Source of the DNA: Blepharisma stoltei ATCC 30299 | Lineage: Eukaryota; Protista; Ciliophora | Assembly: GCA_965603825.1 (NCBI GenBank) | Contig: CBFDEM010000014.1 | Span: 558,001-622,000, forward strand | DNA: 64,000 nucleotides | Direction of reading: 5' to 3' | Part shown: piece after piece, positions 20,270 to 29,992 of the stretch | How the letters are laid out: every line of letters begins with the position of its first letter | Numbering within the stretch: the stretch's first letter is position 1 | Notes under the pieces: generated by a model | What the model was told of the DNA's origin: nothing | What the model saw: only the letters and a program-made list of their open reading frames with translations | Database searches by the model: none | Program-made: the position numbers and the translations under genes

Positions 20270-23200
20270 ATGAGTTTAGCTTCCGAACTACAAAAGAAAG
20301 TTCATCAATTCACCTCAAATGAAGGAGAAGATATTGAAATTTCATGAAGCCTTGGATACTTAACCTATAATAATTACAAAAGTAGATCATATAGGAGTAT
20401 TTTTATCAACTTTCTTTATAATCTAAGAAGCAGAGAAAAAGAATCAGAGAAAAAATCATCCTTAATATATTTAATAAAAATAGTGTCAAGCAAAATTATT
20501 TTTTCACTGCAGTTGTCAAGTCTTGCGTGAAACCAAAAATCTTCTTATGATTGAAAATCAATTGAAATCTTTTGAATTATTTTGGGCTATGCAAGAATTG
20601 ATGCAATATTTTCTGATTTGGGCATTTTTAGCACGTTTTTATATCTTACAATATCTATAATTTGGGTGTATTTTGTGCTATTAGCTATATTGCACTTATT
20701 ATCAAAAACAAGTAAAAAAATATTTTTATTTATATTGCAATTGGAAAAACTGTGGAGAAATCTAATTTTTAGTATAGGTTATATCCCTATGACCTACTCA
20801 ATGGTTACAACAATAAAATATCTGCTAATTTATCCTAATCAAGAAATGCCAGAATATCAAGATAAAATGCTGGATAAAAATTTAATGGATTTTATCATAC
20901 CATTCATAATAACTGTTATTTTATTATTTTTATTTATATATACCCATGAAATTTTTATATATGAAGATAGGCATAGCTATTCTAAATACAACTGATTATC
21001 AAGATCACACTCAAACGCGGAAAAGCTAAAACTAATTGGGATTAATTTGATTTTTATCACAAGTATGCTATGTGACTCCTCAAATTTAGTTTATATTCGT
21101 GTAGCTATATGCTTTGTATCTTTCATAATTACTGCTGGATATGTTTATTATGTTCCTTACTATAACTCATCTATAAATTATTTAGAAGCATCAAGTACAC
21201 TATTTATTGGAATAGGATCTTTTGCCTATATAATTAGCGAAGAGCAAAATAACCCAATCACTGGCATTTTGCTATTTATTTTTTTAGGCCCTATTTTTTT
21301 ATGGTTTTTGAGAATTATTATGAAGCACAGATATTCACATATAAAAAAGCACAGTCTAATTAAACGATATCTAGATATATATGAATTCGAAAGAGCCATG
21401 AGAAATGACCTTTTTGACAAAGCAGCAAAGCAAGAGGTCCTGGAAACATTCGATTTATCATACTGCAACGAAAAATTAAATGTCTCAAGAATGATTGCTA
21501 TTTGGGAAGCAGACTATTGCCTAAATGTACTTCATAGCCCGAGACTGGCATCTATTAAAATTGGAGCTTGGTATCCATGAAAAAAGCCTAATTTTTCAGA
21601 AGAATTTTTGGAGTATTTTTTAAGAAAACAATTATTTGAGCAGCTTTGTAAGAGCTGCGAAGATATTCAATTCCTTATGTGTCTAGAAAAACTAAGAGAT
21701 TGAAAGAAAACTGATAAAAAATTTTGCATAAATCTAATCAATGTAGTCAATTTGATTTATATGCAACATTATGAAATCCCTTCTATTTTCAGCTCCATTA
21801 AGAGGCTGAATGAAAGATTCTGCACCCTGAGGAAAGATTATAATGAAATCGTCTTAAGTTTTCCTAGAAATTCTGAAGCACACTCACTGTTTTATAAAAA
21901 TATCAATGATATAACAAATTTAATGGAATCAGAGGAATTAACAGCCCATAAAAGTAGATATGAAGGTAATATGCATGCCATTGAAAAAAGTGCAGAAAAG
22001 CTGAACTATTTCGAAGAAAGCAGCGGTATAATTATTGCAAGCGGCTGCAAAAACAACCCTGGCACTATTTTGTTTGCAAATCATCATGCTTCAAAAATAT
22101 TAAGAGAAACTGTTATAGGGATTTTGGATTCTAATATAGATGATTATATACCTTATCCATTTAGCATTGAGCATAAAGCTTCTGTTGACAAATTTTTAAG
22201 GAGTTGTAAGACTGCTGATATAGAGCATTCTATGGAAGGAATCCTAAAAAGAAAAAATGGACTACTGGTTGAAATCACTTTTACAGTAAAATGCGCGTCA
22301 TTTGATAAGTATCCACTTTTACTTCTGCTATTTAGAGAAATAAATAATAACCGTCCTATATGTTTATTGGATGATGAGGGTAAAATTGTTGGCTTAAATG
22401 AACATTTTCCAATAATGCTATATTTATCAACTGAATCTTTATTGAATAAATCTATTTTTGATTTTAAATTACAAGTTGGAAGATCAGGCTTTTTCCGAGA
22501 TCTAAATGCAAGAGATATTTCTAAATCTGGGATAGATAATTTCCGTACTGGCGACTTTATCAGATTATGCAATCCTGTTAGTTACATTCTCTGCCAATAC
22601 TCTTCTACCAAGATTTCTAAAAAAAATATGAATCTACTAGCTATAACTCATGACGAAATTAGCCAAAATGCTGCTTTAAATAATCTGCGAGCCCACTTAA
22701 AAGATGTAGCTAAAAAAGCAGAGTTAGCGACTACAGACGATTGCCCAACTTTTAAAACTGAAAGAACTGAAAATTGCACTAATGTAGCTGTAATAAATGG
22801 AGCCAGCTTATCCAAAAAAAAATTAAAATTATTGACTCAGTCTAATAACATCCATATTCCAGGAGTCGATAGTCAGCAAAGCAAAGACGATTCAGTGACT
22901 CCAGATCAATCTTCTATATTGCCTAAACTTATGAAAGATGATTTTTGATGGGACAAATATCTCACAAAAATCAAAAAGCAATTTTTAATATATAAATGAG
23001 TACTATTGTTTTCAATAATTACTATAGTTGTAACCAATGCCATTATTTTGGGATTTGTATTAACTGAGCTAGACAAAACTAAAAATATCAGCTCTTTAAA
23101 AGAAACTGGGCTCATCATTGACACAATGCTGGCAATCTCTGGGCATGCAGTAAAAATGGATATATCTGACTATACAAATGCTACAGCTTTAACAGTAAGC

Positions 23201-24529
23201 CAAGGAATAATGAGGATAACGTCTTTTATTGAACAATTAAAATCAATGACAAAGGAAATGCTAAATGATCTCCCATCTTGAAACTATTGCCCTTCATTTT
23301 CTTTTTATATTGATAATGAAATTCCTATGTGAGAAACTGACGGAGATTATAAAATTGTCCTAAAAAATTTGGTCGATATTTGCCAAGGCTATGAGCATGC
23401 TGCTGGAGATTTTCTTGAAAAATTTGTAAAAAATGAATCATATATAAAAGATTATAATTATTTGGTATTAAATAGTATTGGCATAATAGCTGAACGGTCA
23501 AGTAGTTTAATGGACATTTTATCATCATGTGAAACTTATAGAACCAATAAATTGACTATGACTATTTCTTCACTTATAGCAATTGCAATTACTGTTCTTT
23601 TCATCTGTGCATGCATTATTACATATATTATTATTGACATTTGCCATACTTTGCAAAGTTTTTATAGTGTGATTTATAAAAAAATAAAGCATTCTTATAA
23701 AGATATTCAAAATAAGCTAATCAACAGACTTTCAGATATACACGGATTTGATTATTCAAATATAAATAATGTTCAAAATACTCTTCCAGTTAAAAAATGA
23801 TCCCAAAGTGATTATATAAGAATGCTGCTGAAAATTTCTATTTACTTCGTGCTGACTTTTGCATTTTATATGATTTTTTATTTTTATGCTTATAAAAAAG
23901 GTGAAGATTACTTGCTTTCTCGACCAGATTTTATTGCACTATTTATCAAGCGGCAATATTTTGGGAGAGTTCTTGCATTCTGAGCAAGAGTCTATGTATT
24001 TCAAAATACCCCAATCGGTCTTTATCATCGGTTAAACATGACATATTTCTTTGCTAATACTTCTCAAGAATATTTTGATCTTTTAGATTATTATCAAAAA
24101 TCATTAAAACTCCCTTTATGAGAAAAAAAAATCCAAAAATTCATATCTCCAGAACTTAGAGAGATGATTTTTGAGAGTTCAAATGCGACCTCTTTATATG
24201 CAAAATATGGAATTTCTTCATGCCAAGATGAACAATTTTTTCAGAGCACATATATTTTTGAAGACAAATGAAATCTAGCAAAATTTTCGTCAGTATTAAA
24301 AACAATTGATATAATAAGAGATACCTTGAACACAATTAATTATAATATTATAGATATAGCAACAAGACATTCCACAGACCTTATACTTCAAAATTTTGAA
24401 TTATTAACACAACTTACTATTATATATGCTGTTTTTGCAGCTGTTATATACATTGGATTTTATCTCCCAAGTATATCACATGAATTCGTAAGGCTAGAAA
24501 CTTTAAAAAGATTTTGCAAGCTAATTTAA
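20270..24529 (+). CDS. Large multi-transmembrane PAS-domain protein (TmcB/C-like ciliate family), paralog 1, about 1419 aa
   Basis: All track fragments lie in one frame and are separated only by TGA. N-terminal TM bundle, PAS-like ILFANHHASKIL...IDDYIPYPFSIEH, further C-terminal TM segments. Confidence 0.88.
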
Positions 24530-24856
24530 CAACATATTTGGTTAATATTAATGAAAAATTTATTAAATTATGTAGTAAAAAATTAACTTTAATAAATAAA
24601 ATTACTATCACTCATATATTAATTAATAATCATCAAAAAATAGTTATATTAAAATTATAAATTTAAAAATCCCAAATTAAGAAATTTATATTAGTGATAA
24701 AAATCACTAAATGTGTTTAATGAATAACAATTTTTATTCAGCAGGTAAAAATTTAAAAATTATCTCAAATTTGATTGAGCTATTACAATCTTATTATTAT
24801 AATAAGGCTATTTTTAATAAGAGATTATATACATTTAAATATAGTGAATTGAATTA

Positions 24857-27800
24857 ATGGCAATTGCAACAGAAGTATTCAACCACAACAAAAATTATAT
24901 GCCAAAAGAAGATGAAAATTTCAATATATCTTGAGGGATTGGTCATATAAGTTCCCGAAACTTTAAAACTAGCTCATTTAGGAGTGGTTTGCTTTCTTTT
25001 CTTTTAAATCTACATAATCTCAAACATGAAGTACAAAAAATTTCTTTTTTGATACCAATGATTAAGCTAGCTTTCTTTAAAGTAATTTTTGCTTTACAAC
25101 TATCAAGTATAGGGTGAAATCAATGGTCTTTTAACCGTTGAAACTCAATTGATTCTTTTTGAAATATCTTAGGCTATGCTAGAATCGATAATATTTTTTC
25201 TGAACTAGGACTCCTCGAATACTTTTTGTGCTTTACAGTATTTATAGTTTGAATCTATTTTATTTTATTAATCGCAATATATTTATTAACAATTAGAAAC
25301 AAAAGGATTTCTTTGATACTATTAAAACTAGAAAATTGATGAAGATTATTAATATTTGGAATCGGTCTAATACCAATGCTATATTCATTAATGATAGCTA
25401 TAAAATATTTGATATTTTATCAAAACATAAGTATGGCTGAATACCAAAATAAAGTTTTAAATAGCTCTTTACTAGATATGGTCCCTGTTTTCATTATCAC
25501 TACAATCTTGCTTTTAATTTTCTATTATATGCATGAAATATTTATCTACGAATTTCGTCATAGCCATTCTTCTTATACTATATATGCAAAATCACACTCA
25601 AATCCAGATAAAATTAAATTTTTTGGAATTACTATCATATTGATTTATAGTATGCTATGCGATTCATCACATCTTACATATAAGAAGATTATTATTTCTA
25701 CTTTTGCGTTTATAATTTGTCTTTTGAATCTTTATTATATTCCTTATTTCACTCCTGAATCAAACTTTTTTGAAGCTTGCAGCATGCTAATTGCAGTCAT
25801 AAATTCAATAGCATTTTTTATTGGTGAAATTCAAGGGAATTCTTCCACAGGATTTGTGCTTTTTTTATTCCTAAACCCAATTTTATCATGATTTTTGCAT
25901 ATGATTTTTAAATATAGATATAGCAAATTAGTGAAACTAAATTCAATCAAAAAATATATAGATGTCTATGAATTTGAAAGAGCTATGAGACAAAGTCTTT
26001 TGTATAAGGAAAATCAACCACAGGAAATCCTTGAAATATTTGATTCAGCCTATTTCAATAATAAATTAAATATATCAAGACTTGTAACAATATGAGAAGC
26101 TGACTTTTGTCTAAATTCTTTAAAAAATCCAAGATTAGCATCAATTAAAATAGGATCAGGGTATCCTTGAAAAAAGCCAAATTTTGAAGAAGAGTTTTTA
26201 GAATTTTGCTTAAGGAAGCAACTGCATCAAGAGTTATGCCAAAACTGTGAAGATACACAATTTCTTATGTGCCTCGAAAAGCTAGAAAATTGGAAGAAAA
26301 CAGACAAAAAATTTTGTTTGGATTTAATTGATGTGATTAATCTTATTTATATTGATCATTTGCCTGTACAAAAAATTTTTCCATCAATAGTCAAAATGAA
26401 TAAAAAATTTAACTATTTGAAAAAAGATTATAAAGAAATAATTTCTAGCTTTCCAAGAAGTTCAGAAGCTCATATAATATTTAAACTGGATATTTTATTT
26501 TTGTGTATAATTATTATCACATCTTGCTAAAAATAATTTATATGCTAAGCGCCAACTACCAAATATTCTCTTTAATAGTATAGATTATTTTTTAAAAATA
26601 TCGATGACATAAATAATCTAATGGAATCAGAAGAATTGACGCTACAAAAAAATAGATATGAAAACAATATAAATGCTATCGCAAAAAATGTAGAAAAATT
26701 GAACTATTTTGAAGAAAGTAGTGGGATAATGATTGTTAGTGGGTGCAAAAATAATGTTGGGACTGTACTATTTGCTAATAATCATGCTGCTAAAATTTTA
26801 AGAGATACAACTTTTAATATTATTGGCTCTGACATAACAGACTATATTCCTTCTCCGTATAATATTAACCATAAAAAACTGTTAAAAGATTTTTTACATT
26901 CTTCAACAACAGGGGAAATAGACCATTCAAATGATGCAATTTTTGTAATGAAGTCTGGGTTTCTAGTAGAAGTCGCTTTTTCAATAAAATGCACTTCCTT
27001 TGACAAATATCCATTTTTTCTTGTTTTATTTAGAGAGAGTTATGATAATCGTCCAATATGTCTCCTTAATGAAAATGGAAGAATTATTGGGTTTTCTCAG
27101 TATTTCCCACTTATGCTTTGTTTATCAGAAGATCTCTTGATAAATAAATCAATTTTTGACTTTAAAATACAAATAGGGAGAAGCAGTGTTTTCAAAAAAG
27201 TAAGCACAAAGAATTTGCCATGCCCTGAAATAAAATTTTTTTCTGATAATGATTTTGTAAAATTATCCACCTCTGGTGGCTATATTTTATGCCAATTTAT
27301 TTTAAAACCATTATTTAGTAAATCTTTATATATTTTGGCAATTACTCACGATGATATAAGCAAAAATGCAGTATTAACAAATTTACGGTCACATTTAGAA
27401 GACTTGAATCCAATAGATGATAATTTGCAAGAGGAAGTAGCTCACTCTCCCATTCCAGACATCGAGCTTACTACAACAAATGTGGGCAATGTGAGCAATA
27501 ACGAAATTAAGCAAAAAATAGTAAAAAAAGAAGTTCCTATCAAAAAATTAAAATTGCTTACAAAATCAAACCAAGTCCATTACCCAGGAGAAGATAATGA
27601 GCAAGACATTAAAAATACTTCTATTGACATGACAAACTCCCAAGATCTATCTAAATTTATTAAAGACCATTTATGATGGGAAATTTATCTATCAAAAATA
27701 CGCCGGCAGTTCAGAATTTTTAAATGAATTTTATTTTTTTCCATAATCACTATCATCACAACTAACGGGATTATCCTTGGCTTCACTTTATCAGAAACGA

Positions 27801-29254
27801 ACAAAGCTAACAATATAAATTCTTTAAAAGAAACAGGGCTGATTTTAGACACAATGATAGGCATCTCCAACAATGCAATGAAAATGGATATTTATGCCTT
27901 CTCAAAAGCATCAAGCAACTCCATTAGTAAAGGAGCAGCTAAAATGAGCATTTTTATAGATTCTTTACAAAATATGACCCAAGAAATGCTAGGGGAGCTT
28001 TCAACTTGGAATTATTGCCCTAGCTTTTCATTTTATGTGAAAAATGAAATACCTATGTGAGAGACGATAGGGGCATATAAAATGACTAAAAAAAATTTAA
28101 TTGATATAATGCAGGGATACGAGAATATTGCTGGAAATTTTGTAAAGGCATTTTTAAATAACGAGTCTTATGTTGATGATTTAAATTTTTTGATGCTAAA
28201 CAGCATTGGGGTATTAGCAAAACAGTATGATCATTTGATGGATATTTTGGCATCGTGCGAGAAATATCGAGCAGGAGAGCTAACTGATTTAATATTATTG
28301 CTGATTATAATAGCAAATATAATGCTTTGTATTTGCTTTTGTATAATTTTTTATATTTTATGTACAGTTTGCAGAACATTACAGAAATTTTATGACGTAA
28401 TTTCACAAAAAATTAGGGAATCATATGGAGGGCTTCAAAATAAATTAATAACGCGGCTGACTGAAATTCATGGCTATGATTATATAACAAGTAGCAATTT
28501 AGCTCGATCAATGCCTATAAAAAGATGATTTACAAATGATTATGCAAGAATATTTTTGAAAATTTTCGTTTATTTTCTACTAACTTTTGCCTTTTATTTC
28601 ATTTTTTATTTTTATGCTTATAAGCGTGGAGAAGATTATTTGATGAATCGTCCTAGCTTTATAGCTTTAATGATGAAAAGACAATTGTATGGAAGGATTA
28701 TTGCATTTTGAACTAGAGTTTATGCATTTGAAGATACACCCATAAGTCTTTCATCAAGGCTAAGCAAAAATTATATTTTTTCGGCACCATATGATGAATA
28801 TTTTTCATTGCTAAATTCTTATAAAGACTTAAAACTCCCACTAAGGAGTAAAGAAATGCAAAAGTTTATGTCAAAGGAATTACAAATAATGGCATTTGAG
28901 AAGCTTGAGGACAGCCCAGACTATGCAAATTATGGAGCTTCATCATGTCTAGATGAACAACTTTTTGAAAGCATTTCTTTATTTGATGCAAGCCGCAATC
29001 TAACCAAATTTTCAGCTATATTAGCAAATATTGACGCAATAAGAGACACTTTAAACAAAGTAAATTATAATATCATCGATATCGCAACTAGCCACTCAAC
29101 AAATCTCATAAAAGAAAACTTTCAGTTATTAACATTTCTCACAGCAATTTATGCTGTATTCTCAATCCTTATATATTTTTGCTTTTACATTCCAAGTATT
29201 TCAAAAGAATTCAGCCGGCTGGCAACTTTACAAAGATTTTGCAAATTGATATAA
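24857..29254 (+). CDS. Large multi-transmembrane PAS-domain protein, paralog 2 (about 1429 aa after removing the 108-bp insertion)
   Basis: Colinear with paralog 1 from LGYARID to LxRFCKLI; single frame; the only TAA interruption lies inside 26473-26580. Confidence 0.87.
26473..26582. mobile_element. TA-bounded internal eliminated sequence (IES)-like insertion, 108 bp plus second TA
   Basis: Absent from paralog 1. TA at 26473-74 and 26581-82; imperfect terminal inverted repeat TATAATATTTAAA / TATACTATTAAA; excision leaving one TA restores EAH-RLFFKNIDD (paralog 1: EAHSLFYKNIND). Confidence 0.8.
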
Positions 29255-29290
29255 TAATTCTAAAAATAATAATTATTTGCTAATTTTTCA

Positions 29291-29992
29291 ATGCCATACT
29301 CAATCTCAATTCCTGAATTTGATAAACAAAGCGACTATGTAGACTATATTTTCTTAGTCGTTGACCCCCAAACAGGAGAGTCTTGGAATTTCAAGCGAAG
29401 ATACTCAGTGCTCCGAAAAATCTCAGAATCACTGAAAAAATTCTCAAAAGATGCTCAATTTCCAGGCAAAAAGGTTTTTGGAAATAAAAACTCTAATTTT
29501 CTTGAGCAGAGAAGGAATGACCTTCAACGCTACTTCCAAGAATTAGTCAAAAACCCAAGCATTTATTCTTCACCAATTTTTCAAGAGTTCATGAAGCCAA
29601 GTGACAGGAAAGTTCTTAATGACTCAAAAAACAGCCAATCACAAAGAAATAAGCCCAAAAAATCTGCACAAGAAATCGAGCAGCAAATTGGTTTATTATG
29701 CTCAAAAATTGCTGAAGAAACATCAAATAAGTTTTTAGATTTGGGAGCACAGCCTAACCCTGTAGAAGATGAGGACGCAGAAAAAAGAGTCAGCGAATAT
29801 TTCAAATCTGCCAATAATTTCAGGTTTAGCTATACTTTAGAGATGCCTGAGGGTCAAAATATTAATCAAACACAAATAGCAAGGCCTGTTGGGGACTTCA
29901 GGCAAATGATTGATAGGCTGTTTGTAGAAATAATCCAAGTGGCTGAAGAGAAACAGCAGTTAGAGTCTTTAGTATTAAGATTAGATCGCTAA
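29291..29992 (+). CDS. PX (Phox homology) domain protein
   Basis: KRRYSVLRKI, FPGKKVFGNKNSNFLEQRRNDLQRYFQEL. Confidence 0.9.
   Translation: MPYSISIPEFDKQSDYVDYIFLVVDPQTGESWNFKRRYSVLRKISESLKKFSKDAQFPGKKVFGNKNSNFLEQRRNDLQRYFQELVKNPSIYSSPIFQEFMKPSDRKVLNDSKNSQSQRNKPKKSAQEIEQQIGLLCSKIAEETSNKFLDLGAQPNPVEDEDAEKRVSEYFKSANNFRFSYTLEMPEGQNINQTQIARPVGDFRQMIDRLFVEIIQVAEEKQQLESLVLRLDR

Follow-up and report, generated by a model that had tools for sequence, protein, structure and literature searches.

A 108-bp insert with IES-like anatomy interrupts a PAS-type sensor gene in the main somatic form of Blepharisma stoltei

How does a gene in a somatic ciliate genome come to carry 108 bases that close an otherwise open reading frame? 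The question is raised by the second of two tandem genes in the somatic (macronuclear, MAC) assembly of Blepharisma stoltei ATCC 30299, which comprises 41.46 Mb in 64 contigs and was translated with TGA as Trp. The window, i.e., the whole 64-kb stretch of DNA that was analysed, corresponds to positions 558001-622000 of contig C14, and the features of the locus are collected in Table 1. The original prediction had taken the segment for a TA-bounded IES, somatically retained or variably excised, that might serve as a DNA-level switch for one paralog. We compared 12 sequencing runs with the locus by sampled words and aligned the contigs of four of them (X1, X5, X7 and X9) over 24600-29400. The run data were Logan contigs and not raw reads, so that rare forms can be hidden in them.

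Table 1. Coordinates of the features at the locus, numbered from the first letter of the window
Feature	Position	Strand	Description
Paralog 1	20270..24529	+	1419 codons, uninterrupted; in tandem with paralog 2
Paralog 2, coding sequence	24857-29254	+	one open frame apart from 108 bp (26474-26581)
Paralog 2, coding part 5' of insert	24857..26473	+	539 codons; hydrophobic N-terminal region
Block R1	25292..25410	+	119 bp, coding
Block R2	26306..26556	+	251 bp: 168 bp coding plus left 83 bp of insert
Left ATA direct repeat	26472..26474	.	contains TA 26473-74
Insert	26474..26581	+	108 bp, 21% GC; five in-frame stops; unique in the somatic genome
Left arm of terminal inverted repeat	26475..26484	.	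TAATATTTAA
First in-frame TAA	26528..26530	+	predicted product stops at 557 aa (539 native + 18 insert-derived)
TA inside insert	26557..26558	.	contigs of runs X5 and X7 begin matching here
Right arm of terminal inverted repeat	26571..26580	.	reverse complement TACTATTAAA
Right ATA direct repeat	26580..26582	.	contains TA 26581-82
Paralog 2, coding part 3' of insert	26582..29254	+	890 codons plus stop, wholly open
PAS-type sensor region of paralog 2	26750..27361	+	Pfam Diguanyl_cycl_sensor and PAS_9, both above cut-offs

The proteins of the two paralogs are 54-56% identical. Minus the insert, paralog 2 amounts to 1429 residues (539 + 890). Its N-terminal region is hydrophobic, apparently a multi-pass membrane part, and is followed by PAS-type sensor domains and then by another hydrophobic region. 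At least 112 genes of the somatic genome belong to the same family, and many of them stand in tandem arrays. Besides the window (20270-29254), family members were seen on contigs C17, C4, C32, C25, C46 and others, and each shows this order of two hydrophobic regions, the first of them N-terminal, with PAS-type sensor domains in between. A Pfam search with the membrane parts of family members gave no match.

BLASTN and MAFFT alignments confirmed that paralog 2 holds exactly 108 bases more than paralog 1, which is continuous at the site. Five in-frame stops lie in these bases, at 26528, 26534, 26546, 26573 and 26576; the first of them is the TAA that had been pointed out beforehand. As had also been foreseen, the insert lies upstream of the PAS-type region, which is absent from the predicted truncated product. 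Deletion of 26474-26581, i.e., of the insert with one TA, stays in frame and gives the clean junction SSEAH-RLFFKNIDD that had been claimed. The three nearest paralogs, of which one is paralog 1 and the other two lie on contig C11, possess long unbroken frames and are collinear here, with EAH-S-LFYKNI, EAN-QT-FYRSL and EAD-RVYYKNL corresponding to EAH-RLFFKNI in paralog 2. Since all three are continuous at the site, the insert is derived and peculiar to paralog 2. At a cut-off as loose as E<=10, the 41-Mb somatic assembly yielded no second copy of it.

The ends of the insert are those of a mobile or excised element. The exact direct repeat that matches the in-frame deletion is ATA, which includes the TA pair; a pairing of TATA with TATA in register was rejected, as the deletion would then be 106 bp and the frame broken. 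Read inwards from either end, the inner 10 bases form an inverted repeat with 8 matches (TAATATTTAA / TACTATTAAA), a score reached by only 0.15% of the 24,048 TA..TA pairs in the window (p about 0.0015) and by 0 of the other 535 window TA pairs with 108-bp spacing. Blepharisma IES ends follow a weak consensus, TAT rrr tttt (PMC9942856). The left end, TATAATATTT, agrees with it at 8 of 10 positions, a score with a background of 6.4%, and the right end at 6 of 10, with a background mean of 5.3. The TA flanks with inward inverted symmetry, on which the original prediction had drawn, were thus recovered as ATA/TA repeats and inverted arms, and they support an IES or transposon-end anatomy of the insert.

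Among Blepharisma IESs three quarters are TA-bound, the commonest repeats being TA, TAT/ATA and TATA, and the short ones are mostly non-repetitive and intragenic (PMC9942856). Short IESs furthermore fall into sharp length classes, and the class of 108-112 bp is among the two largest, with 1,592 TA-bound members (PMC9942856 Table S1). The insert resembles the periodic TA-bound IESs of the ~110-bp class (PMC9942856) in the TA-containing direct repeat at both boundaries, here ATA, and in its intragenic, non-repetitive and AT-rich nature, as well as in ends that start with TAT, inverted termini and a removal that restores the frame. Its 108 bp coincide with the lower bound of the class, which taken on its own is weak support for an IES, since such classes cover about half of the lengths from 64 to 115 bp. 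In one respect the likeness fails. Periodic IESs are germline-limited, with a macronuclear retention of <=0.02 (PMC9942856), whereas the insert is in the main somatic form, and contigs of X5 and X7 hold only its last 25 bp.

A spliced intron would also leave the protein intact while the stops stay in the DNA. The four equivalent 108-nt deletions end in AT..GT, TA..TA, AT..AT and TA..TA, and none of them has GT-AG, GC-AG or AT-AC ends; moreover, Blepharisma introns are mostly 15-16 bp long (PMC9942806). With GT..AG ends and about 15-16 nt as the measure, the insert does not fit, in agreement with the earlier claim that it has no 5' GT and is not an ordinary intron. What speaks for splicing is a single in-frame GT-AG span (GTGTAT...GTATAG, 26503-26583, 81 nt), the only one that clears all five stops with the conserved coding sequence uncut, and a 3' end that is T/A-rich and terminates in TAG. 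Splicing of these 81 nt would, however, leave ten additional residues where the three paralogs have 0, and the same site is intron-free in all paralogs compared. We hence regard an unusually long spliceosomal intron, be it the 81-nt GT-AG form or a non-canonical one of 108 nt, as very improbable. Contigs of the RNA-type run X9 lie at 26109-26291 and 28463-29136 only.

In run X1, which probably is a HiFi library of macronucleus-enriched DNA and possibly the source of the assembly, a single contig of 11,075 nt at 72.9x spans the stretch including the insert, with no difference from the reference and no branch. The share of sampled locus words was 1.00 in each of the runs X1-X4, which come from two studies. 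From the unbranched contig and the complete word sets it follows that the insert belongs to the main somatic form, as the proposal of somatic retention had it. It would be conceivable that the insert stems from a micronuclear read merged into the assembly of the soma, since some micronuclear DNA is expected in a library from a macronucleus-enriched fraction; with all sampled words present in four runs from two studies and the insert sitting unbranched within 11 kb at 72.9x, we attach next to no probability to such an artefact. For the second half of the proposal, variable excision, the data gave nothing: no contig with the CAT-AGA junction (26473/26582) was found in X1, X5, X7 or X9, although rare forms may be lost from contigs. 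Nor did anything in the data point to a DNA-level switch for paralog 2.

We counted lineage-specific substitutions with the C11 copies as outgroup, separately for the coding pieces 5' and 3' of the insert. Paralogs 1 and 2 turned out equal, with 30 vs 36 substitutions upstream and 60 vs 55 downstream. By these counts there is no relaxed constraint on paralog 2, and its 890 downstream codons are open; paralog 2 evolved as a working gene. It follows that the lesion is either (very) recent or normally removed.

A recent lesion could be the work of a young TA-targeting, MITE-like fragment that inserted into paralog 2 in the germline, is not recognised by the excisase and would thus be present in both nuclei, making paralog 2 a new pseudogene. 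A TA duplication with inverted ends is the mark of a Tc1/mariner-type insertion, the lack of any other lesion or of relaxed constraint in paralog 2 fits a recent event, and the somatic form has the insert fixed. The abundant MITE family of the Blepharisma germline, the Tc1/mariner-derived BogoMITE, likewise has a TA target duplication and terminal inverted repeats. However, it measures about 389 bp, has TAA/TTA repeats and occurs in about 8,000 copies (PMC9942856), whereas the insert is far shorter, fits the size class of the excisase and is single-copy in the 41-Mb somatic genome. Furthermore, the intact insert is absent from the contigs of X5 and X7. We hence consider a new MITE-type pseudogene quite unlikely.

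We lean, with due caution, towards normal removal, i.e., towards the insert being an IES-type element that a PiggyBac-type excisase usually takes out and that was left in the main somatic form of the reference lineage. Excision is here inferred from the paralogs only, because no contig shows the excised junction, and its agent and the germline derivation of the element are likewise inferred. In this scenario, once the genes had duplicated, a short transposon-derived element would have entered germline paralog 2 at a TA and would then have been handled as an IES, with a precise cut at its TA ends by a PiggyBac-type excisase. Such precise removal would explain why the gene stayed constrained. 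In the macronuclear development behind the present ATCC 30299 soma, the element would have been left in, possibly once a nested inner segment had been removed at TA 26557, and vegetative growth would have propagated the retained state. The outcome would be a product of 557 residues that lacks both the PAS-type sensor and the C-terminal membrane regions. Such a truncation is probably tolerated, as the family counts at least 112 members.

The germline side of this scenario is less simple. Runs X5, X6 and X7, from a second study of the same organism, probably are short-read, sucrose-gradient micronucleus-enriched fractions. They hold 0.90-0.91 of the sampled words, and the missing share corresponds to the 281 words of block R2 (Table 1). 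Present in X1-X4, this block is missing from the contigs of X5, X6 and X7 and has zero depth in X5 and X7. A contig of X5/X7 over 25411-26305 is identical to the reference and then continues, after 26305, with 376 unlike letters; on the other side, X5 has 25 unlike letters, ending in GGATTA, before matching resumes at 26557. Block R1 is represented in X5 by one contig of 153 nt at 4.7x, compared with 60-76x in the flanks, and in X5 and X7 unlike letters precede 25411. The coding parts of the two blocks are genuine gene sequence, with homology to paralog 1.

Searches of the somatic assembly with the unlike letters from the contig ends of X5 and X7 gave no match. They thus behave as germline-type DNA and not as another somatic locus. 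The last 25 bp of the insert, which adjoin the exon at TA 26581-82, run into this sequence, so that the right end of the insert borders germline-type DNA, and TA 26557 looks like a nested insertion point. A simple picture is contradicted by X5-X7, in which neither the insert's left 83 bp nor the preceding 168 coding bp were found, so that the germline state does not look like a plain 108-bp IES and the present germline seems to lack the element in its somatic form. Of the IES-like element originally proposed, the anatomy stands, whereas a self-contained 108-bp IES was not recovered from the germline-type runs. As a minor observation, joining 26305, or a TA four letters beyond it in the unlike sequence, to TA 26581-82 would be in frame with a loss of 56 codons, which has a chance of 1 in 3.

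Several ways to account for the gaps were rejected. Drop-out of AT-rich DNA is not a sufficient cause: the blocks have 21.5% GC, yet 100-bp windows in the flanks with 18-21% GC were assembled. Germline blocks that lie between two IESs, elsewhere or inverted, on a second germline-only gene copy, or on one of two alleles were discarded as well, because each of these models predicts at least half the flank depth for 25292-25410 in X5, where 4.7x was seen. A path from germline to soma by deletion only cannot yield letters that are found in the soma alone.

Alternatively, the locus as carried by the soma might be an older version or a different one, with 26306-26556 and 25292-25410 replaced in the micronuclei. 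The insert would then not have been retained from the germline of today but form part of a wider difference between the nuclei of a clone that is more than 50 years old. In line with this are the zero depth of the one block in X5 and X7 and the thin coverage of the other, the word share in X5-X7 that equals loss of the 281-word block, the flanking contigs that extend into letters foreign to the somatic assembly, and the failure of AT drop-out to account for the gaps. The long time in culture and the second route of macronuclear development that Blepharisma possesses would suit it, too. On the other hand, these are assembled contigs, which lose rare or awkward paths, and a hole in them proves nothing on its own; the depths of neighbouring X7 contigs (104, 58, 177) are non-additive, and the nature of X5-X7 as micronucleus-enriched fractions is read from the methods of PMC9942856. 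It would also be much for chance if one gene had undergone two replacements within 1.3 kb, and in published work the sequences of the soma are treated as a subset of those in the germline. All in all, we hold such a wider discordance to be unlikely. With similar reserve we may speculate that an unexcised IES and coding blocks of 119 and 168 bp persist in the soma where germline-type DNA has germline-only sequence instead, the soma being either a fossil of an earlier germline or the result of alternative block-wise processing.

The spacer between the paralogs (24533-24856) has 14.8% GC and is without a contig in X5/X7, though the genes on either side are covered; the gap may reflect extreme AT-richness or some other difference in structure.

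If the insert is a retained IES, as we favour, it has precedents. In Blepharisma, retention of IESs is a continuum and partial retention has already been reported; the somatic reference contains 10,048 cryptic IESs with length peaks from 72 to 110 bp, deleted in about 5% of somatic reads (PMC9942856). Like the insert, cryptic IESs are segments of the somatic reference and often TA-bound. About 95% of copies keep them and a minority lose them by excision, and such an excised minority was unseen here, where contigs were compared. Cryptic IESs are, however, ordinary somatic sequence that is cut by mistake, whereas the insert does not belong to the gene and disrupts it. Retained or cryptic IESs are thus a kind already known in Blepharisma stoltei, of which the insert in paralog 2 would be a further case. 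A retained IES here would mean that a failure of germline-to-soma editing became the main somatic form and truncates one of at least 112 membrane-PAS genes. It would moreover provide a PCR-testable marker with which excision efficiency can be followed, as well as the way retention is inherited along both routes of macronuclear development.

Comparable phenomena are familiar from Paramecium, with retention of IESs, nested IESs and a mating type determined via IES-like excision of the mtA promoter. Failed or alternative excision of a TA-bounded segment there alters the somatic product and can be passed on through the maternal soma. In the nested IESs of Paramecium one IES lies within another, and the TA breakpoint at 26557 suggests the like for the insert. 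In contrast to these systems, the insert shows no sign of two somatic states, of maternal inheritance or of a phenotype.

More interesting than the insert itself are the somatic blocks that appear to be missing from germline-type DNA. If true, this mismatch would contradict, in an old clone, the rule that whatever the soma contains is also contained in the germline. A further difference was seen in X5 only, where 28836-29179 is bordered by GC-rich unlike letters (junctions 28836-28850 and 29168-29179). These junctions show duplicated overlaps of 12-15 bp, and a (GATTA)n tail follows 28850. A contig with the empty-site junction at this locus reached 56.7x, compared with 78-101x in the flanks. 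The pattern resembles that of retroelement-type insertions, or of a gene fragment that was captured, in a fraction of the copies.
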